Below are positions 9,852 through 33,290 of a DNA stretch of 39,228 nt, piece by piece; the stretch's first letter is position 1, and every line of letters starts with the position of its first letter. The position numbers were made by a program, and so were the translations under genes. The stretch spans positions 11,627,780 to 11,667,007 of the forward strand of contig NC_068998.1 in assembly GCF_001194135.2 (NCBI RefSeq). The letters are read 5' to 3'. The notes beneath the pieces were generated by a model. It saw only the letters and a list, made by a program, of their open reading frames with translations, made no database searches and was not told the DNA's origin. The stretch is from Octopus bimaculoides. Its lineage: Eukaryota.

Positions 9852-10330
9852 ACTTTCATTCTGTGTCTTCCTGTCTTTCTTTCTCTTTCTTCCTCTCTTT
9901 CTTTCTGTCTGTCAGTCTGTCTCTAACCCTCCCACTCTTGTCTATTCTTCTCTTTGTCTGTTTGTCTGTGTCTCTCTTTCTTCTCTCGCCCCCCGTCCCC
10001 CTTCTGCTCTTTGTGTGCCCCTTCTTTCTTCTCTCTTTCTTTCTCAGTCTCTCGTCTTTCTTATCTCCTCTCTCTCCCTCTCTCTCTCTAAATAATCCTT
10101 CTTTCTCTCGTGTCTGTCTTGTTTGTCGCCTTTTTCGTCTGTCTCCCCTCTCTCTGTCCCTCACCCACTCTCTCTTTCTCTATGTCTCTCTCCCCCCCTT
10201 TTCCTCCCCCGTCTCCCTCCCGCTCTCTGTGTGTGTCTGTCCCATTTCTCTCTCTTTATTTCCTTCTCTCTCGTCTTCTTTTTCTCCACATCCCTCTCTG
10301 CCCCCTCTCTCTATCTCTCTTCTTTCTCTG
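8567..10330. repeat. Degenerate (TG)n, (CCTG)n and CT-rich simple-repeat block
   Basis: Direct inspection; includes gap 9587-9758. Confidence 0.9.
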
Positions 10331-10516: not shown

Positions 10517-10680
10517 AGGTGGAAGCATAGCTGCCTGGCAAGAAGTTTGCCTCCCAACCACATGGGTTCCGGGTTCAGTCTCATTGCGTGGGACCTTAAA
10601 CAATTGTCTTCTACTATAGCCCCAGGTCGACCAAAGCCTTGTGAGTGAATTTAGTAGACGGAAACTGAGAGTAGCCCGTC
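10517..10680 (+). mobile_element. SINE family A copy
   Basis: Homologous to 28247-28410. Confidence 0.8.
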
Positions 10681-12679: not shown

Positions 12680-14025
12680 GGCGGCGAGCTAGCAGAATCG
12701 TTAACGCACCGGGCAAACAGCTTCGCAGCAATATGTCTGTCATTACATGAGTTCAAATTTTGCCGAGGTCAACTTTTTCCTTTCAGCCATCGGGGTTGAT
12801 AAAATAAGTATCGTTTGAGCACTGGGAGCGATGCGATCGAATTTCCCCTTCCCGCAAATTGCTGGCTTTGTGCCAAAATGTGAAACCAATATTTTATTTT
12901 ATTTATATTTGACGATGAACGAGCAGAATAGTTAGAACGCCGGGCTGAATGCTGAGCGGTATTTCGTCCTTCATTACTTTCTGAGTTCAGATTTATCCTT
13001 CCAAGATCGATAAGTACCAGTTGAACACTGGGATCGATCTAACAAACTAAGCCCATCCCCCGCGACTGACTGGCCTTGTGCCAAAATCTGACAACAAAAT
13101 TTTACTTATTTATAGGAATTTTTCTAGGTAAAATCTCCAGTTTTTTTTTATGTCTTCACTTAACAATAATCATTGCCATCACGAGATGTTCAACATTCCC
13201 ACGTTTTGTGCTGTTTCCATCTTAAACGAGACTATCTCTTGATGTTCTAATAACAGGGGTTCCCAACCTTATCGTGTTTTTGGACCCCCTGAGAGCTATC
13301 TTATCAAGGTGTCGTGCAGTGGGACTGAACCTAGAACCGTGTGATTGGGAAGCAAGCTTCTTACCACACGGCCACATTTGTTTAAAATGTTGTCACAAGG
13401 CTAGCAATTTTAGTGGGGGAGAGAATTAGTCGATCACATTTACATCAGCTTTAGACTGGTACTTTTTTATTTTATCGATCTCGGGCAAGATTAACAGCAA
13501 AATCGATCTCGACGGCAATTGAACAGGAAACGTAAAATGCAAGAAGAAATGCTTCTAAACACTTTGTTCGAGAATCACAAACAATTCTGCCAGCTTACCG
13601 CTTTAAACACTTCCAATAATCCTTTCTACTATAGGCACAAGCCTGAAATTTGGAGGAGGGGTATAGTCGATTATATCAACCCCAGTGCGTAACTGGTACT
13701 TTTTTTTTAAGTATAAGTTTGAAAGCTGAGTCAACGGAAATGAGTTGAAATTTTCAGGCGGTTTAAATGCACAGGTGTCCGATATCCAAAATGTCAGCAG
13801 AATGGAACCCAGGAGTCATGACCTGTATACGACCCGTAAGAAGTTAAGGGCCGCAACGCTTGCCTGAGTGGGGGTGGGGGGAGTGGATTCTCCTCCGAAG
13901 ACCTTCTGTTGTTCAGCTCTCTTGAGAATCTCTTACCACTGTCAACCCCGAAAGGATGCAAAAGTAGAGTTGACCTCACCGGAATTTGAACCCAGTGCGT
14001 AAAAATGGACAAAGGGTCGCTAAGC
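12680..14025. mobile_element. Cluster of family B SINEs (12680-12891 +, 12911-13098 +, 13390-13603 -, 13615-13708 -, 13940-14025 -) plus a family A fragment (13305-13377 -)
   Basis: Each segment aligns by eye to 24143-24360 or 28247-28410. Confidence 0.7.
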
Positions 14026-14274
14026 TTTTATATATACATGCATATGTGTGTGTGTGTGTATAAATAGATATACACACGCATACACACACACACAAACACA
14101 CAAATATACGCACACACAGCTCTATGAATGTCAGTAGACCATATTAGAGGATGGATCTTAACTATGTCTCATCTACACCTACAGACTATTCACATCTAAA
14201 GGCTTGTCACTCTTTAAATCACTTCTCAGTTCGTAACGAAGTTACTGAGGAGTTCCTCTCTGTATGCGATGAAT

Positions 14275-14495
14275 TCATTTCGTACAAGTGGGTTGTGAGT
14301 TCAATTCCGATTGAAAGTTACAGCGTATAATACTTTCGATCAGAGTGATTGTTGGAAAATCCATACAAATAATACCAAACCGTTTCTTGGGTTTCTTTCC
14401 TTGTAAGTATTCCTGGAGTCGAGGGTTGAGACGATTAGCTACGGCCTTAGGCCAAGCCCAGAAGCTGGTTCCACTGGTGTAGGTTATATAGATAA
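14275..14495 (-). CDS. PI-PLC coding exon 2 (terminal; aa 212-284 plus TGA)
   Basis: A polypyrimidine acceptor TATTTTGTTTTTTATTTGCAG| (AG at 14497-14496) is phase-compatible with the exon 1 donor (G+TT = Val). It reads VIYITYTSGTSFWAWPKAVANRLNPRLQEYLQGKKPKKRFGIICMDFPTITLIESIIRCNF..., the typical C-terminal barrel strands of this family, including the conserved MDF aspartate. Stop TGA at 14277-14275. Confidence 0.9.
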
Positions 14496-16004
14496 CTGCA
14501 AATAAAAAACAAAATACGAGTGGTCCTAAATACATCAACATTGTTCATAATTGTTGTTACTGTTAATTATTTTATTGCTGTTATATATTTATGCTGTGGT
14601 GAGAAGATGGGAAGATGGGAAGGCGCGTGGTTTAGTGTTTGAGATATTGCACTACCGAACGTCGTTTCACTTCTCGGAGCGGGCGGTGTGTTGTGGTGTT
14701 GGGCATAACACTACATTTCACGTGAAGTGACGGTTTCGCGGTTTCCTTGGCGCCGGTCCGTCGCAGGATTGTTCATTTTTGCCAGCTGAGTGGACTGGAG
14801 CAACGTGAACTGAAGTGGTTTGCTCAAGAACACAACGTGTTTCCCTCAGTCCAAGAATCGAAACCACAATCTTACGATCATGAGGCCAACAGTCTAACCA
14901 CTATGCGACGCGCCTCTACCATCTAACGATAACAAACAGATAAATATATATACATGTGTGTGTGTGTGTGTGTGCTTGTATATTTTCCCCTTTGCCATGC
15001 TTCTGTCAATCATAATTATGCTTTTAGCAAAAAATATGAGAACTATTTTTATTTTCTATATAGAATATTAGAATATGCAAGCTACTTGAAATGCGTATGC
15101 GGACTTTAGCGAACCGTTTCTACACGCTCTTCCAGCACTTATATAGCGAACAGTCTTTCTGAAGAAAATTATATTCAACCAATGAGCTGAAATTTGAACA
15201 ACAAACGACGAGTAGACTACTCACGAATATATAAATATGTTTATACAGCGTTCCGTTCGTATATTCTATCCCAGTACTTCTATGTGCCGTAGTCTGCTTA
15301 TGGTTTGTTTGTTGTTCAAATTTCAACTCGCTTAGCGAATGGATGCGTTAGTAAACCTTATACATGGGCATAGTCTGTTCGTTGTTCGTTGGCCAAATTT
15401 CAGCTCCTTATGCGAGTTTAATTTTCATTAGAAAAACAATTCGTCATTCAATTTATTCGTTTAGAGAACCGTTTGTATATGGGTACCCCACTGTATATGT
15501 AAAGCGGTAAAAACTATTTATGGATCATCCTGTATATTCTTATGGGGAACTTTCGTTAATAATGTGCACAGATGAAAATGTGAATTAGAGATATCTCATA
15601 AACGTTAGTAGAGATTAAAAGAAGGAAAACAAAGAGGAATTGAACGAGAAAGATGCAGCAGACCTAGAAGTCTATAGTTCAAAAAACAACAATACAATAG
15701 ACCCAGAAGGCCAAAATAAAAAAGAAATAATAATATATAGATTTTTTCACACACAAAAGGACAACTGACCAAAACATAAAAGTTAGCTACACGCTGTAAA
15801 AACACATTAAAAGAGATTTTCGCGGAAACCCAGAGTGATTGTCCACCATCAATATAAATTGCAATTAAGATTCAGGCGCATAGCATGAAAACTATGTTGT
15901 ATATGTGAAAAATAGCTGTACATGGTGGATACATTATTTGTGGGCATCATTCCAAGAACGAGAATATTCTAGAATGAAAGAAATAATCGTGATAGTTGTT
16001 ATTG

Positions 16005-16215
16005 TCTAACGCCAGCAGCCTTGTTCGATTAAATCTAATATCAAAGGTATTCCAACCATGACCGTCCCAGCTTTTTTTGTTCAGCTATTGTGTATCCTGG
16101 ACTATATTATGTATGTGTCTTTTATATGTAAATATAAAATGGTAAGGTGTGATTTGAAAGAGATTTGGTTGCTATTTCTAGCGACCTGATAGAAGCTCCT
16201 TCGTTGGCTTGCAAC
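16005..16215 (+). repeat. Dispersed repeat family E (unclassified)
   Basis: Shared core ...GTGTGATTTG..GAGATTTGG.TGCTATTTCTAGC... with copies at ~2520-2730(-), 12415-12570(-), 20920-21001(-) and 30700-30835(+). Confidence 0.55.
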
Positions 16216-16631
16216 ACAATAGAATTCATAAAAGGGAAATTTATTAAGAATATTTTCAACTAACATTTAATAGAATTCGATAAATATATAATACAAAACT
16301 CACATTAAAATCCAAATCCAAATCCAAGCAAAACACAAACATAAGCGAAGAAAGAAAAAGAAAACGGAAAGAAAAAAGAAGAGGAAAAATAGGAAGAATG
16401 AAAACGAAGCAAAAAAAAAAAACTACCAATTCAACACCAAGTGCCTTAATTGGTCGCACACCAAAATGTTCAAGAGATCCTACTGAAGCAAGGGAATAAT
16501 TGTTAACTTGCAGCTGACCATTCTCTCAGCTCCACCTCCACCCACACGCTCCCCTTCTGCGTTTAACCGTTATACTCACTCGCAGTTTGTTCCATGCCTT
16601 TTGCTATTCCCAAAATAGCCGCGAACAGACG

Positions 16632-17530
16632 TACGTGGCCTGATCAATAAGTATCCGGACTGTTGGCATAGTAAAGAAGTTAAAGCACGCAGAGTAAAGT
16701 TGCTTGATACACGTTGATCTTGAACTCTGTTGCACATGCGCACTAAGTTTTAACGTTCTAGCTCAGTTCCGCTGTTTACAGCAGTGCTTGGAAGGTAGGT
16801 GTGTAGCGTGTGATCGTCGCATTGATAATGATAGAGAAAATTGAGCAGAGAATCTGCATCAAATTTTGCCAAAAGCTTGGCGATACTTGCTCAGAGGTCT
16901 ATGCAAAGTTTTCAAAAAGTTTTCAGCGTTCTCGACACAATCAACACGATCTTGTGCAACTGAAACCTGAGTCTTTTTGGTCAGCCGAAAGCAGTTTTGG
17001 CACAAGCTTGGCAGATACGCATCTCATACCCAAATATTCAGTGATAATGGAGCGAACTGAACCATAACTAATCTGCACATCCTCTGATAACTCACAGATG
17101 GTGATTCGACGATTTCCCCTCATATCTGCGATGTTTTTCTCAGTTCTGCTGGTTGCAGGTCCCCCAGAACGTTTGTCAATATCGCCATTTTTTCGGCCAT
17201 CTTGGAAATATCTGAACCACTCGTACGCTTGTGTGCGGCTCATACACTCCTCTCCATACACTTTCTGCAGCTTTGCGTAGGCCGCTTTGCGTAGGCTGCT
17301 TTGCAGGTATTGCCATGACAACTTTCATTGTCATGGTCAATGTGACGATCACACACTACACACGTTCCTTCGAAGCACCGCTGTAAACAGCAAAAGTGAG
17401 CAAATACGTTAAAACTCAGTGCGCAAGCACAGCAGAATTCAAGATCAATTTGTGTCGAGAGGCTTCACTCTACGTACTTTAGCTTCGTTACAATGGCAAC
17501 AGTCCGGATACTTATTAATCAGACCTCGTA
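16632..17530. mobile_element. Non-autonomous mariner derivative made of two inverted 5' ends, TA-flanked
   Basis: TA at 16632-33 and 17529-30. Ends are CGTGGCCTGATCAATAAGTATCCGGACTG and (rc) CGAGGTCTGATTAATAAGTATCCGGACTG. The + arm encodes the transposase N-terminus MIEKIEQRICIKFCQKLG. The - arm encodes the HTH region (VYGEECMSRTQAYEWF...RRITICELSEDVQISYGSVRSII...SAKLVPKLL) and stops just before the first catalytic Asp. Confidence 0.88.
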
Positions 17531-17841
17531 GATGCCCTCTCGGCCCTCCCAACTCTACCAAAAGCAGTGGCACCCAGTCGTATATATATTTTTTGTTCCT
17601 ATGAACCCCTTTGATTCCTCTTTTACTCTTCTGGACCCCCATAGCCATTCGATGTCAAGGATTTGAACACTGCACATAGAATCAGAAGAAACACTACAAA
17701 GCATTTTCTCCGATGCTCTAACGATGCTGCAAAAGAATTGTTTTGTAATTTAGCCAGCAATTTAAGAGGTGGGAGGGCATCGATTATACCGGCCCTAGTA
17801 TTTGACTGGTACTTTATTTTTATCGATTCCAGTATGATGTT

Positions 17842-18090
17842 GGAGGCGCGTGGCTTAGTGGACAGGGCGTTAGATTCATGATCATAAGATTGTGGTTTCG
17901 ATTCCTGGACCGGGCGACGCGTTGTGTTCTTGAGCAAAATACTACATTTCATGTTGCTCCGATCCATTCAGCTGACAAAAATGACCAATCCTGCGACGGA
18001 CTGGCGTCCAACCCAGTGGCGAATATATTCGCCACGGAAACCAGAAAATCCGCCCTATGAGTCTATGAGACCCTATGAGACTCGGGAATG
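17842..18090 (+). mobile_element. SINE family C-related copy (intronic)
   Basis: GGAGGCGCGTGGCTTAGTGG...GGTTTCGATTCCTGG...TTGAGCAA...CCTGCGACGGACTGGCGTCC. Relatives at 14621-14723(+), 14727-14916(-), 18806-19075(+), 19712-19990(-), 20030-20234(-) and 34293-34356(-). Confidence 0.75.
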
Positions 18091-18488
18091 GTCGTTATCC
18101 TTTTATCCTATCCAATATGATAAAAGGCTAAGTTGGTATTTTTGTTCGACGCTCTAGCGAGTCTGCCAATCCTCAGCCTCAAAGGCAAAGCTGACCTCGA
18201 CAGGACTTACACTAAGAACGTAAAGCGCTGTGACTAAATGCTTCAAGACAATTTGTCCGCTTCTAATAATTCAACCAATCAGCCACTCGTCTCATTGAGG
18301 CTCAGATAATATTAGAAAATGTCCTAGTTTTTAAATCCGATTACAACTATAAATTATGCTAAGTACAGAGATAAATTCATTCGCCGGTTGTCTTATATAT
18401 ATAAAGTGAGATGTAACGATTTGATATTCAATAGATATCATCCATTATTCCTTCTAGTAAAACAACTGAAAATTTGGTCAACCATATC

Positions 18489-18491
<3 letters not shown>

Positions 18492-18576
<85 letters not shown>

Positions 18577-18583
18577 TGATGAC

Positions 18584-18627
<44 letters not shown>
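18492..18627. repeat. (TAA)n followed by (TGA)n
   Basis: Direct inspection. Confidence 0.95.
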
Positions 18628-18628
<1 letters not shown>

Positions 18629-19271
18629 AATAAAATAATACGTTTACAAGATAATGTTATATGGCGGAGAAATGCCGACTGTACTTTTAGTATGGGATTA
18701 TAACAGATTTGAGAAGGGAGCTAAATGCGTCTACTTTAAATTAAAGTATTTATTTATTTATTTATTTATTTTACTTACTCATTGAGCAGGTTTCTTTACA
18801 AAACGACATGTTGGGCTCACGATCGTTAGATCAAAAGTTCGATTCGCAGACCTGGCAGCACATTGTGTCTTTGAGCAAGACACTTCCTCTCATGTTGCTG
18901 CAGTTCACTCACCTGAAAATGAGCACCTGCTGCAGCTAGGACGAGGTTTAACTCTGCGACGGACTGGCATCCGTTCAGTGGCGGAAATGGAGAATTATAC
19001 TCTCTGGCGTCTGAAAGCCTCGAAAACCCGGTTAAGCTTGTGATCCTCTGGGCTCCAGGCAGACAGTTGTAACAGCACACTTGAAGTTCCGCAAGCGTGA
19101 AAGATATGTTTTTTTCCCCCTCTTTTATCCTTTATTGCTGTTTCATGCTGCATTGCACATCGGTCCTACTGAGGACAGTCCCAACAGAACATCATTTGCT
19201 GACACTTCGCCCAACTCTTCTCCACTTCTGGTAAAAACGAACACAGTGAATGCTTTCTTACGTAGCTGATT

Positions 19272-19321
<50 letters not shown>

Positions 19322-19390
19322 NNNNNNNNNNNNNNNNNNNNNNNNNNNNNNNNNNNNNNNNNNNNNNNNNNNNNNNNNNNNNNNNNNNNN

Positions 19391-19446
<56 letters not shown>

Positions 19447-20730
19447 GTGGAGGAAGAAGGAAAGAGTAGAATCCACATTTATTTCAGGTCTGATACTTTA
19501 TTTATCGACCCAGAGAGAATGAAGGCAAAATTGACTTCCGCAGGATTTGAACTCAGCGCAGAGAGCCGGAACAAACACCCAATGACCAATGACAACTACA
19601 GTATGTACCTGTCGGAGCAGTATTTGAGTTTGCAGACACCACTCCATGCTCTGGGGCAATACAGCTTTTACAGCAACAATGCCGACCTAATAAAAGTGTT
19701 GATCGTGGTATACAGCAACCCACCTCAACACCGTCAGTTTCGACGATGAGGCTTCCAATCGATCCGATCAACGGAACAGTCAGCTCGTTAAATTAACGTG
19801 AATGTGGCTGGGCACTCCTCAGACACGCGTAGCCCTTAACGCAGTTCGCAGGGAGATTCAATTCAGCGTGACACGTAATGTGACAAAACTAGCCTTTCTG
19901 AATTAGATGTACAGCTCATTTTTGTCAGTTGAGTGGACTGGAGCAAAGTGAAATAAAGTGTCTTGCTCAAGAACACAACATGCTGCCGGATATCGAGTCT
20001 TTATGCATACATATAAGCAACGGAGTTTCCCAGTTTCTGTGGTGCATATATTCTACCCCGGGTGGACTGCCAGTCCGTCGCAGGATTATTTAATTCTACC
20101 CGCTGAGTGAACTGGAGTAACATGAAATGAAGTGTTTTGCTTAAGACCACAACGTATCACCCGGTCCAAGAATCTAAATCACTGTCTTACAACCACGAGT
20201 CCAACACCCTTGACCACTAAGCCACGCGCCTCCACGGCATAGTCAAGTATTAGGTTTTCAGAACGTTAAAGCTTACGGGAGACCCAAGTTATCATATAGG
20301 ACCGAGGGTNNNNNNNNNNNNNNNNNNNNNNNNNNNNNNNNNNNNNNNNNNNNNNNNNNNNNNNNNNNNNNNNNNNNNNNNNNNNNNNNNNNNNNNNNNN
20401 NNNNNNNNNNNNNNNNNNNNNNNNNNNNNNNNNNNNNNNNNNNNNNNNNNNNNNNNNNNNNNNNNNNNNNNNNNNNNNNNNNNNNNNNNNNNNNNNNNNN
20501 NNNNNNNNNNNNNNNNNNNNNNNNNNNNNNNNNNNNNNNNNNNNNNNNNNNNNNNNNNNNNNNNNNNNNNNNNNNNNNNNNNNNNNNNNNNNNNNNNNNN
20601 NNNNNNNNNNNNNNNNNNNNNNNNNNNNNNNNNNNNNNNNNNNNNNNNNNNNNNNNNNNNNNNNNNNNNNNNNNNNNNNNNNNNNNNTGTGTGTGTGTGT
20701 GTGTGCGTGCGTGCGTGTGTGTGTGTGTGT

Positions 20731-20920
20731 GATTGTCCTCCATTACCGTTTGACAACCGGTGCTAGTGTGTTTACGTCCTCGTAACTTAACGGTTCGGCG
20801 GAAGAGAACGATAGGCTAGGCTTAAGAAATAAGTCATGCGGGTCGATTTGTTTTACCAAAACCCTTCAAGGCGTTGCTCCAGCATGGCCGCAGTCAAATG
20901 AGTAAAAGAATAAAAGAATG
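20731..20920. repeat. Dispersed repeat family D (microsatellite-associated; ends in AGTAAAAGA repeats)
   Basis: TTGACAACCG.TGCTAGTGTGTTTACGTCC...GCTCCAGCATGGCCGCAGTCAAATGA. The same terminal motif occurs at 27677-27697. Confidence 0.5.
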
Positions 20921-21461
20921 GAAAAGATGACAGCGGCTGGAACGCTTATGGTTATAAGATATGTTCCCTTTCAAGGCCGACCTAGGGTTAAACAACAACA
21001 CCACCTTAAATTGCTATATTGCAGTTACTATATTATAATCTAAGTATTTTCCTGGGGTTGGTTCCAAAGCTTTCTAGCTTGGTAATTTTTCCAAACCAGC
21101 GGTGGTCACCTTGGCCAACACACCCCGAATTAAACAAACATTAAATTTAAATTTGCTTGGACAATTAAATGAAATACAGGTGCCTGTTACATAAGTGTAA
21201 ATTAGCGTGGACTATAAGAGGTGCCGAACCATTAATGTTCGGAAAATTGGTGTTGTACCCGTATAAGCATGTTGTTGCTTCTGTGATTACAGTACTGTTG
21301 CATGGATATTGTGTTGGAGCTATACTGTACGCTATATATTGGACAGGCCAGATTCGACGGAGTTGGCATTTGTCGGCTGGTTTAGCATGGGTTTACGATT
21401 TCGAGGTAGCCTATCTTCCTCAGGTAGAAACGATGGAGTTAGCGTTCTGTGAATAAATGAT

Positions 21462-21499
<38 letters not shown>

Positions 21500-22250
21500 T
21501 TGCTTATATGTATGCATAAAGATACACGTTCATACTTAAGTATGTGTGTGTGTGTGTGTGTATTTATATATATCAAATATATGCATATATGTATACATAC
21601 ATACATAAATAAATATATATATATATATATACACATGTATACACATACACACGCATATGTATAAATACATGCATGCACATATATACATATGCACATACAT
21701 ACATAGTTACATATATATGCATACATACAAGAATATACATACATATATACATACACACCTGTATTTATATAGACACACACACGCATACATATGCATACAT
21801 ACAAGTATATAGCACACACATACATACATACATACGCACACACACACACACACACATCGTTCTAGCACTTTTATTCTGTTCCATCACTTGTAACTACTTC
21901 CTATATATTACATGTGCAATTACAAACCTGTTACGCATGCATAAATCCTATGTACTTAGCAGTGATTACTATAATACTTAATAAGCAGATTGAAATGGGT
22001 GGTGGTGGTGGTGGTGGTGGTGGTGGTGGTGATGGTGAAGAGGGGAGCTACATTTCATATCGGGTCTTTTAACAGGTTTATTAGGGGCCTGACATAGGGA
22101 ACAGTACGATAGGTACAACACCAATCGTAATTATTGTTGGCGCTGAATTGTTGATAACTGGAAATATGCACTTTAGAGTACAATGGGTACGGTACCACAC
22201 AGTAGGTACTCTGTAGTAGTTAGTAAAGGCATTAGTAAAATCCAACTTAC

Positions 22251-22884
22251 CGGAACTTCCCTCGTCCTCACCGGAAGCGTCGAGTTTACGTTTGACATGC
22301 TGCCATTTGTGTCCTATGTGTAAGTCCAGAATTGTAGGCACCTTCCAGTGGTCCTCAATTGAGAACATGTCACCATTGTAATCCAGTCCGTACGCGGATC
22401 CCCGGAAATCTTGCAAGATAACAATTTTGCCACGGATGTCTCCAAGAATGGGTATAGAAGAGAAGCAACTCCAAATTCGACCGTCCCTGATGTACTGTTG
22501 GATAGACGCCTGGAACGTTTCTTCAAAGGGTCGGCTATTTTCAGCCGACTGAAATTCCTTCTTAATACGCATAATGATTATCTCTGTCGGGTAGTCTATT
22601 AAAAAGCGAACGATCTCTCGCAGAACCATGGGAAAATCAGCATGTTGGTATTTAATTCCGTGGTGTATTGGCAACCCGTTACGATAATGTCGACAACGAA
22701 TATCTAAGAAACGTATGCCTGCCTGTAGTTGTGAATATAACAACCAGTGTTGACACTCTGCCATGTCTCCGCCGTAATGAGCCATCGTGTTGTGTGTGCC
22801 TGGCACGGTTAAGTGTGCTAGCGATGTTTGATCTGAGAGTGTCGACATCCAGTCGGTGTTGTAACGACTGGGGAAGTTTAACAT
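22251..22884 (-). CDS. PI-specific phospholipase C, bacterial-type X-domain (1-phosphatidylinositol phosphodiesterase-like), coding exon 1 (aa 1-211 plus 1 nt)
   Basis: The translation has the B. cereus/Listeria PI-PLC motifs in order: DWMSTL..SLAHLTVPGTHNT, QLQAGIRFLDIRCR, LPIHHG, FL..YPTEIIIMRIKKE, DIRGKIVIL, EDHWKV. Homology ends at ...GGA AGT TCC G|GTAAGT, a consensus donor (GT at 22250-22249). The true 5' end is uncertain. Confidence 0.93.
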
Positions 22885-23521
22885 ATCGACTGTGGGTTGA
22901 CTGGAACAGGAGCCCTCGATGGGAACATGGTGCTCCTTTCCCTGTAGTCTCCCTAGTCTGTAACCGGCCCGAGGCCGGAGGCAATAGACATATGTAGATG
23001 ATGTTTAGACACAACAGTACAAGGTGAGTGCCACTACTACACTGCTGAACTGCAATGGATACACTCGTTAGCAGCAATATAAGAAATATTGATTTTGGCT
23101 TTTGCCATAAAACGTTTTTTTTTTATTTCCTTTTCTTTATGTTATTTTTTTTTCTCCAACTGATTTTCAACTTGTTACTATTAAAACACGAACGTGTGCT
23201 GTGAATTGATCGTCCTCCCTTGGGTTGGTGGTAACGCTGTCTGTTTTCTTCCCTCATTTAGATAAGAGTCTGTTGATATTGTACGTTCTATTGGAATTTT
23301 CTAATAAATCATTGTTATGAATCACAGCCTCATTAGGAATCCTATTGTCCGGTTTTAATATTGAACAGAACAGAATGAAACGAAAACATCGGAAACAGGT
23401 TTCGATGTCGGTTTGCTTTTATCTCGTGTTTTCCCTTTAATAGAAAAAAAAATAGTAAAAATAAAAATTTCATCCTCGTACGTCGTAGCTGAGACAGATT
23501 TGACAGGAGAGTGAAGAAAAA

Positions 23522-23559
<38 letters not shown>

Positions 23560-27577: not shown

Positions 27578-27666
27578 TTACCAACCACATGGTCCTGGGT
27601 TCAGTTCCACTGCGTGGCATCTTGGGCAAGTGTCTTCTACTATAGCCTCGGGCCGACCAAAGCCTT
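27575..27666 (+). mobile_element. SINE family A partial copy (runs into a gap)
   Basis: GCTTACCAACCACATGG...GGGCCGACCAAAGCCTT. Confidence 0.75.
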
Positions 27667-28246: not shown

Positions 28247-28407
28247 GGCGCAGGAGTGGCTGTGTGGTAAGTAGCTGGCTTACCAACCACATGGTTCCGG
28301 GTTCAGTCCCATTGCGTGGCACCTTGGGCAAGTGTCTTCTACTATAACCTCGGGCTGACTAAAGCCTTGTGAGTGGATTTGGTAGACGGAAACTGAAAGA
28401 AGCCTGT

Positions 28408-28410
<3 letters not shown>
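28247..28410 (+). mobile_element. tRNA-derived SINE, family A (octopod OK/OR-type; exact family not assigned), full length with (TA)n tail
   Basis: Pol III A-box TGGCTGTGTGG and B-box GGTTCAGTCCC, followed by a body shared with the copies at 10517, 25607, 27575 and 13305. Confidence 0.8.
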
Positions 28411-32023: not shown

Positions 32024-33130
32024 ATGACTGTGCTGAAATTAAATATGTGAATATGGATAGATTTGGGTCAATTTAGAGGCAAGGTCACTTCACTTACTCA
32101 ACGCTTTGAGATCGCTCGACATAGATGTGACAGCTATCAGGGAGATGAAGGTTTCTAGAATGCACACACTAGCGCCCGTTTTCGACGACTGTTAGATATT
32201 CTCATTTCGTGGTCAGTCAGAAATTAGTGCTATTCCGAAAATCCTTATATCTCAAAGTACGGGCAAAGTTCTTGGACCCGGACAGTAAGCTGGTGGTCCT
32301 GGACGTGAACCGCAGCGAAGGTGGCATCTTTAGACTGGTGACAGTTTATACCATGACAGGAGCTGGAGGATCAGATTTCTTCAGACCTCTAGAAACATTC
32401 CTGGAAATGCCTCGCTCTTTAGTACTAGTGAGGGAGTGAAATTGTATTTTGAACGAACAGAATGACTGTGTGAAGATAGTACATAGCAGAAGGTGGCGCA
32501 AAAGTGTGGCACACCTGCTCAGAAACTTCTAGTTGCCTGACGGGTACCGACTGGATTTCTCTGATGTGCCAGCTTGGACATGGAACAACCACAGTGGGTC
32601 ATTCAGATCATATCTAGAAAGAGTATTTGTTGGGTCAGTGGATAAGAATAACGTAGGATGTCTACAGATCAAACTCCAAAGAATTAGCAACAGGAAGAAA
32701 CAAATTAGAGAGAGAACTAGTTCGCAAACTAAAGGCTTCGTGACCCACGTGTTAGCAATGGAAATGGTGCTTGGCCATTTCTTCGAGGCGGAACAAAAAA
32801 GCTGCATTGTCAAAACTAAAACTGTGGAGCTGTTCGATCTCGTCAAGGCAGCTCGCTCTCACTTCTCCTGTGCGTGCTGCCTTAAGGCCACTGCTGCGGA
32901 AGTTGGAAATGGGACCTGGGAAGGCAGTGTTGGTGTACGCAGACGACGTTACTGCTATGGTGTTGGATACCTCCGAGGTGGCGGTGGTCGTCACTATTCT
33001 AAAGAAATACAAGTCGATGACAGGACCCAAAATCAACGCCAAGTAGGTAGGCTTGCAGTTGTGTACCTGGAGAGACAGGTCCATGCCATCAGACAGCATT
33101 GTAAATCGTGTATACACACTGAAACCTGGG
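32024..33130 (+). mobile_element. Decayed Tx1/L1-clade LINE ORF2 (AP endonuclease fused by internal deletion to the RT YADD region)
   Basis: Frameshifted pieces: HLLNALRSLDIDVTAIRE, KLVVLDV...FRLVTVY...SDFFRPLETFL, YRLDFSDVPAWTWNN...RSYLERVFV (APE). Then LRPLLRKLE...VYADDVT...TGPKIN (RT). Confidence 0.85.
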
Positions 33131-33290
33131 TATACATTTTGCCTTTTTTATTTCCATTCTACATAAATCCCCACACTTTGTTTGTCTTTGTATTGCCCAC
33201 CCCACCCCCTCGCCATCCGTCGTCCTAGTAGCAAATAAAGGAAATAATAATAATAATAAAGGAAATAATAATAATAATAATAATAAAGGA

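Follow-up and report, generated by a model that had tools for sequence, protein, structure and literature searches.

A two-exon octopod gene for a likely intracellular, bacterial-type PI-specific phospholipase C from a patchily distributed animal family

Background

How does a gene that looks bacterial come to lie, interrupted by an intron, in the genome of an octopod? The question is raised by a 39,228-nt stretch of octopod DNA (hereafter the window, meaning the whole stretch analyzed), in which a first-pass annotation had joined two distant minus-strand open reading frame (ORF) pieces into a bacterial-type phospholipase C with specificity for phosphatidylinositol (PI-PLC). The answer developed here is that the window most probably carries a functional, vertically inherited two-exon octopod gene, which encodes a 284-amino-acid, single-domain, presumably Ca2+-independent enzyme of the bacterial type (EC 4.6.1.13-like). 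The enzyme likely works inside the cell and belongs to a very patchy, animal-wide family with two subtypes. Its catalytic chemistry, its intracellular site of action and its bacterial ancestry are points that we infer.

Bacterial enzymes of this class, such as those of Bacillus cereus, Listeria (PlcA) and Staphylococcus aureus (cd08586-type, EC 4.6.1.13), have five canonical catalytic residues, namely His32, Asp33, Arg69, His82 and Asp274 (PMC9572076). Eukaryotic examples are on record: ascomycete fungi have bacterial-type PI-PLCs in cytoplasmic, vacuolar and extracellular forms, which are eukaryotic and single-domain like the protein described here and of which the non-secreted cytoplasmic ones retain the canonical residues (bioRxiv 10.64898/2026.07.28.741319). 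In animals, a family member is known as a medaka gene with differential expression in the intestine, grouped with pancreatic digestive enzymes (PMC7092794, PMC8187396), and we found no literature on the animal bacterial-type family beyond these medaka expression reports. The novelty implied by the first-pass annotation is nevertheless not borne out, as automatic annotation in RefSeq and UniProt already names relatives '1-phosphatidylinositol phosphodiesterase(-like)'. The window gene adds a member to a known, little-studied family.

Results

The gene lies on the minus strand. Coding exon 1 (22884..22251, 634 nt) opens with an ATG at 22884 and supplies residues 1-211 and the opening base of codon 212, while coding exon 2 (14495..14275, 221 nt) supplies residues 212-284 and ends with a TGA stop at 14277-14275, for a total of 855 nt, or 284 codons and a stop. 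Exon 1 contains the PI-PLC-X region with H31, N32, D61, R63, H75 and K108, as identified by Pfam, translation and a 100% tblastn match; exon 2 contains the IYITYTSG strand and D257, the equivalent of Asp274. A single phase-1 GT-AG intron (14496..22250, minus strand, 7755 nt as assembled) separates the two. At the donor, exon 1 ends in TTCCG and is followed by GTAAGT (22250-22245); at the acceptor, a polypyrimidine tract leads to a CAG ending at 14496, such that TTTTGTTTTTTATTTGCAG directly precedes exon 2. The junction falls in phase 1 and rebuilds a G/TT codon for Val212. Unspliced read-through past the donor adds 56 unrelated codons. Against Listeria PlcA (1aod, E 7e-29), the PI-PLC of B. 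cereus and the intronless homologues of gar, Glandiceps, Ephydatia and Calothrix, the spliced protein aligns over the junction without a gap. No further PI-PLC copy was found in the window, where tblastn returns the exon 1 and exon 2 pieces alone.

Two assembly gaps fall within the intron. The first, at 19322..19390, has (GA)n microsatellite sequence on both flanks, and the second, at 20310..20687, has (TG)n at its high-coordinate side. Because both gaps lie inside the 7755-nt intron, the reading frame is independent of them. The orthologous intron of Octopus bimaculoides is free of N and measures 811 nt (donor GTAAGTTG, acceptor ...TATTTGCAG). Three blocks of the window intron, at 22250-22078, 17978-17841 and 14723-14496, are colinear with it in order and strand at 80-83% identity. 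The central block (17841..17978, minus strand; 79.7% against the central part of that 811-nt intron) is conserved, so the scaffold is colinear across the gaps, and the gaps thereby come to lie in a lineage-specific expansion of the intron. A hidden coding exon is excluded, since no residue is missing or extra across the junction relative to Listeria PlcA and the intronless animal and bacterial homologues. On these alignments we regard the two-exon model first proposed as confirmed across both gaps; the intron site is also kept in O. bimaculoides and Argonauta hians. Microsatellites and a mariner/Mos1-type transposase helix-turn-helix fragment (16941..17321, minus strand; Pfam HTH_48, E 4.9e-6) contribute to the length of the intron as assembled.

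O. bimaculoides and A. hians have the intron at the identical position and phase, with lengths of 811 and 3870 nt, respectively. Identity to chromosome CM046618.1 of O. bimaculoides, at the locus of its orthologue, P0003, amounts to 80-86% in the 5' flank, the intron ends and the 3' flank. The conserved 5' flank (22885..23559, minus strand) is about 80% identical at the nucleotide level, and the conserved 3' flank or untranslated region (14105..14274, minus strand) forms part of an 83% block that spans 14723-14105. With its spliceosomal intron and its conserved non-coding surroundings, the gene is an animal gene, and an octopod one, as had been supposed.

A 1582-nt Logan contig (SRR11869390) from another, closer octopod, here L002, matches exon 1 at 95.7% amino acid identity, with a synonymous divergence (dS) of 0.23 and a ratio of nonsynonymous divergence (dN) to dS of 0.078. 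In comparison with A. hians, dN is 0.098 and dS is saturated, and both exons have diverged alike, to about 86% amino acid identity. The dN/dS against O. bimaculoides is 0.585; by three-taxon arithmetic on the pairwise distances, dN amounts to about 0.17 on the Octopus branch and about 0.02 on the window branch, and most of the protein change between the two would have arisen on the former. The gene is thus under strong purifying selection, and its intact frame, synteny and low dN/dS rule out both contamination and a pseudogene. Gene and intron are older than the split between Argonauta and Octopus, across which dS is saturated. In Octopus vulgaris, at least three paralogues occur on one chromosome, and gene model P0002 resembles a fusion of two partial exon 1 copies. 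Around the A. hians locus, 24.7 kb of flanking sequence contain a single gene. A second tandem exon 1 in that species, which would make an alternative-first-exon locus with a further copy concealed in a gap of the window, was considered and rejected, the 95.7%-identical match at 609-1241 belonging to L002.

The profile search proposed with the first-pass annotation returns PI-PLC-X as the sole Pfam domain (E 1.6e-11), with no PH, EF-hand, Y-box or C2 domain, as in the bacterial enzymes; a search of the protein against NCBIfam gave no match. The closest solved structures are Listeria PlcA (1aod, as above), followed by the PI-PLCs of B. cereus, Bacillus thuringiensis and S. aureus. An AlphaFold (AF2) model built from 22 homologues has a mean predicted local distance difference test score (pLDDT) of 91.2 and a predicted template modelling score (pTM) of 0.90. 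By Foldseek, its whole-chain template modelling (TM) score is 0.80-0.83 to 1aod, 3v18 and 1ptd, the PI-PLCs of Listeria, S. aureus and B. cereus, which like it consist of one (beta-alpha)-barrel domain of the X type, some 280 residues long. Sequence identity to the solved bacterial enzymes is 22-29%. PLCXD1-3 and PLC-beta/gamma/delta belong to the same PI-PLC X-domain superfamily and have the two catalytic histidines, but eukaryotic PLCs match the window model weakly (TM at most 0.53) and have Ca2+ ligands in place of Arg69. Pfam, alignment and Foldseek agree in pointing to a single-domain PI-PLC of the B. cereus/Listeria type with the Arg69-type active site, as first proposed, and not to a multi-domain PLC-beta/gamma/delta/epsilon/zeta.

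In the alignment, H31, D61, R63, H75, K108 and D257 correspond to His32, Asp67, Arg69, His82, Lys115 and Asp274 of the bacterial enzyme, in agreement with the earlier mapping of H31, R63, H75, K108 and D257. The general base/acid pair, H31 and H75, is conserved in at least 103 of 108 aligned sequences, R63 is invariant in this set, D61 is invariant across the aligned homologues, and D257 is kept except in one member of the second animal subtype (type B, below), which has Asn. The claim that the full motif set is kept does not hold, for a residue that the first-pass annotation did not list, Asp33, is replaced by Asn32 (codon at 22789-22791), leaving the canonical five minus one. Asn is found here in most animal members of the type A subtype, versus Asp in 56 of 62 bacterial relatives. 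A further departure from the bacterial enzymes is Asp in place of Arg163.

The window protein begins 11 hydrophilic residues before a conserved Trp-Met motif, matching the start of the mature bacterial domain, and no hydrophobic leader is present at its N-terminus or in the in-frame sequence upstream. The O. bimaculoides orthologue starts in the same exon with ATG GGC TCC (protein MGSGFS; start codon at 10001-10003 of that locus, L003). This start codon aligns to a GAG at 22917-22915, within the conserved 5' flank of the window, and to a GTG at about 576-578 in L002. A start 11 codons further downstream, MLNFPS, is common to the window, L002 and A. hians. With GAG in place of ATG, a myristoylation-type Met-Gly (MG) start has been lost in the window lineage. 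Many animal homologues of several phyla begin MGxxx[STAGCN], and the MG starts of octopus, acorn worm, coelacanth, gar, caecilian, lungfish and sponge members mostly fit the N-myristoylation pattern; bacterial relatives have no eukaryote-type MGxxxS/T start. Hydrophobic, signal-peptide-like leaders occur in teleost, frog, hagfish and several Ptychodera members, and likewise in bacterial proteins. Having neither a signal peptide nor Gly2, the window protein is predicted to be a soluble intracellular enzyme.

Relatives were ranked among the 120 best matches. The closest are from octopods, namely A. hians (86%) and O. bimaculoides and O. vulgaris (56-69%). A next tier, at about 45%, comprises teleosts (si:dkey-266f7.9), coelacanth, gar, hagfish, amphibians and hemichordates. 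Type B, the other subtype, unites the sponge Ephydatia with lungfish. The clade includes many genes already named in databases, such as zebrafish and medaka si:dkey-266f7.9, Ephydatia Em0001g757a, and RefSeq models from O. bimaculoides, O. vulgaris, A. hians, Latimeria, Xenopus, Ptychodera and Glandiceps. Bacteria rank after these at 37-41%; actinomycete, myxobacterial, Bacteroidota and cyanobacterial homologues, at 35-41% identity, are closer than the solved bacterial enzymes. This is a large family, with 4638 clusters (50% identity) at E<=1e-3, and in GTDB species genomes 595 of the 600 stretches among the matches listed encode a relative, with up to 41% identity to the window protein over the best segment. 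The 120 best matches contain no other mollusc, no decapodiform cephalopod, no amniote, no arthropod and no named fungal protein; none is named PLCXD, to which no direct comparison was run.

A neighbor-joining (NJ) tree of our own (108 sequences, about 60 of them bacterial; 262 columns; 500 bootstraps) separates, unrooted, all animal sequences from the bacterial ones at 92% bootstrap. When Listeria and B. cereus are added as outgroups, they fall on the bacterial side and the value for the animal clade remains 92%. This clade takes in octopods, hemichordates, fishes, amphibians, coelacanth, hagfish and sponges; the cephalopods group at 100% and the sponge/lungfish subtype at 97%, and branching matches taxonomy within vertebrates and within cephalopods.

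Intron positions shared across phyla were considered as a sign of age and rejected. The genes of Glandiceps, gar and Ephydatia are intronless, and in the carp Labeo an intron lies about 30 codons upstream of the octopod site, in phase 0. In contrast to the octopod members, which have the exon structure and intron position of the window gene, teleosts have their introns elsewhere. The octopod intron is hence a gain specific to that lineage, and the animal ancestor of the gene probably had no intron. Additional intronless PI-PLC paralogues or fragments occur within 10 kb in Glandiceps (L004, 18744-19598 and 966-1334) and Ephydatia (L005, 2392-2826), which points to local tandem duplication in both. 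Type-B copies of the lungfish Protopterus (P0083, P0099) are 54-60% identical to Ephydatia P0082, P0065 and P0067, which equals the identity among the sponge paralogues themselves. Their N-termini are nearly identical (MGNINA[KR]DPDYWNVP), which is odd for lineages so distant. This closeness could reflect strong constraint or animal-to-animal transfer.

Beyond this locus, the window yielded no convincing gene. The sole other long, non-repetitive ORF (32533-33228, plus strand; 231 amino acids) has no Pfam match. A repeat of about 100 nt, at 80-87% identity, occurs in the window at 10588-10680, 27614-27666 and 28297-28409, and in the A. hians locus (L001) at 12864-12926, 18969-19061 and 22819-22884; it is probably an octopod element resembling a short interspersed element (SINE). 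GC content is 46.5% in the exon 1 region versus 20-35% in neighboring kilobases. The window has 13 N-gaps, and a large share of it is microsatellite-like, with (TG)n, (GA)n and (TA)n. Many N-gaps and microsatellites are typical for a short-read octopod scaffold.

Discussion

The conserved residues, read against the bacterial enzymes, suggest how the protein would work. His31, oriented by Asp257, would deprotonate the inositol 2-OH, which would attack the phosphodiester to yield diacylglycerol and inositol 1,2-cyclic phosphate. Arg63, replacing the Ca2+ of eukaryotic PLCs, would stabilize the transition state, and His75 would protonate the leaving group. With Asn32 in the place of Asp33, the customary helper of His75, the reaction may have another rate or pH profile. 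The enzyme would most likely act inside the cell, on phosphatidylinositol (PI) of cytosolic membrane leaflets and not on extracellular glycosylphosphatidylinositol (GPI) anchors. As to history, the family ancestor was probably intronless and possibly bacterial in origin long before octopods; the octopod stem lineage would have acquired the intron, which repeats and the mariner fragment lengthened in the window lineage.

Several observations weigh against the interpretation of this locus as a functional, vertically inherited gene. The phylogeny is distance-based and leaves out the fungal cytoplasmic bacterial-type PI-PLCs and the PLCXD proteins; type A, the subtype of octopods, hemichordates and vertebrates, has a bootstrap of 61%, and the deep nodes among phyla are without resolution. 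Asn32 could, from the alignment, mean strongly reduced or altered activity. All close Logan matches are genomic read-throughs of the donor site, with no transcript support seen, and an undetected, leader-bearing upstream exon is possible.

The data fit an old animal-lineage gene with very many losses. The first-pass annotation had offered either an old horizontal acquisition or a patchily retained lineage; the second fits best, a transfer that is recent or specific to octopus is excluded by the animal clade, and a very old transfer is still in play. An ancient bacterial origin at the base of the animal clade, followed by patchy loss, is plausible, and the intronless gar, acorn-worm and sponge genes are consistent with it.

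Among the rival explanations, the one that survives best, itself unlikely, holds that several independent transfers, into octopods, hemichordates, fishes and sponges, came from one unsampled donor lineage, or passed from animal to animal, and mimic an old clade. An extremely patchy distribution, the lack of introns in most copies, branching among phyla that has no resolution, and lungfish type-B copies that are as close to Ephydatia paralogues as these are to one another would all suit such a history. Nevertheless, the tree tracks taxonomy within vertebrates and within cephalopods, no donor clade appears among the best 80 GTDB loci or the metagenome matches, and the Asp33-to-Asn change and the MG start, both found across phyla, favor one eukaryotic ancestor.

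A recent or octopod-specific transfer from bacteria, with one intron gained later, is a distinctly poorer candidate. Identity to bacterial proteins (mean 39%, maximum 44%) is nearly that to vertebrates (44.5%), the ancestral gene is intronless, and the 120 best matches name no other mollusc or decapodiform cephalopod. However, octopods group with hemichordates and vertebrates in the one animal clade, at 92% with the Listeria and Bacillus outgroups included, which on the tree leads us to reject a transfer specific to octopus or recent. A placement within a broadly distributed metazoan clade had been named beforehand as the result that would speak against horizontal transfer, and the tree largely delivers it. 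The MGxxxS/T start is, moreover, common to many animal members of different phyla and has no counterpart in bacterial relatives, and gene and intron predate the Argonauta/Octopus split.

The suggestion that the protein is secreted and cleaves GPI anchors, or serves in digestion or venom, fares marginally worse still and looks very improbable. It draws on the signal-peptide-like leaders of teleost, anuran, hagfish and several Ptychodera homologues, and on medaka si:dkey-266f7.9, which falls with pancreatic digestive enzymes in interleukin-17 (IL-17) pathway knockouts (PMC7092794, PMC8187396). The proteins of the window, of A. hians (P0001) and of L002, however, begin 11 residues ahead of the Trp-Met motif with a hydrophilic N-terminus, the O. 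bimaculoides orthologue begins MGSGFS in the same exon, and nothing hydrophobic lies in frame further upstream. The window protein thus differs from the bacterial enzymes in lacking a secretion signal, and from its animal relatives in having neither the MG start of O. bimaculoides, coelacanth, gar, caecilian and sponges nor the signal peptide of teleosts and anurans; a predicted soluble intracellular enzyme speaks against the venom or GPI-anchor-release role that the first-pass annotation had entertained.

Least probable by a clear step is a decaying pseudogene or a mis-joined scaffold (unrelated exons, or an exon hidden in a gap), which could appeal to two intron gaps whose true size may differ from that assembled, the lost ancestral start codon (GAG at 22917-22915) and the replaced Asp33, but which is opposed by an intact 284-codon frame with a dN/dS of 0.078, exons equally diverged from A. 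hians, colinearity across both gaps with the gap-free O. bimaculoides locus, no residues missing relative to intronless homologues, and a downstream ATG start common to A. hians and L002.

Conclusions

The preferred reading remains that of an old, vertically inherited octopod gene. More tentatively, we can imagine one ancient bacterial acquisition, an early conversion to an intracellular, N-myristoylated enzyme with the Asp33-to-Asn change, many losses, and a redirection to secretion in teleosts and frogs; in that case the octopod gene might represent a second route in animal cells, independent of receptors, that leads from PI to diacylglycerol and cyclic inositol phosphate. For annotation, the result means that a 'bacterial-looking' gene is endogenous and not contamination. 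The biological interest is modest and lies in the family rather than in the window copy. Known from sponges to lungfish, this family displays a clean split between myristoylation-type and signal-peptide starts, as well as the repeated substitution of a residue that assists catalysis. If active, its members would make diacylglycerol and cyclic inositol phosphate outside the control of Ca2+ or receptors.

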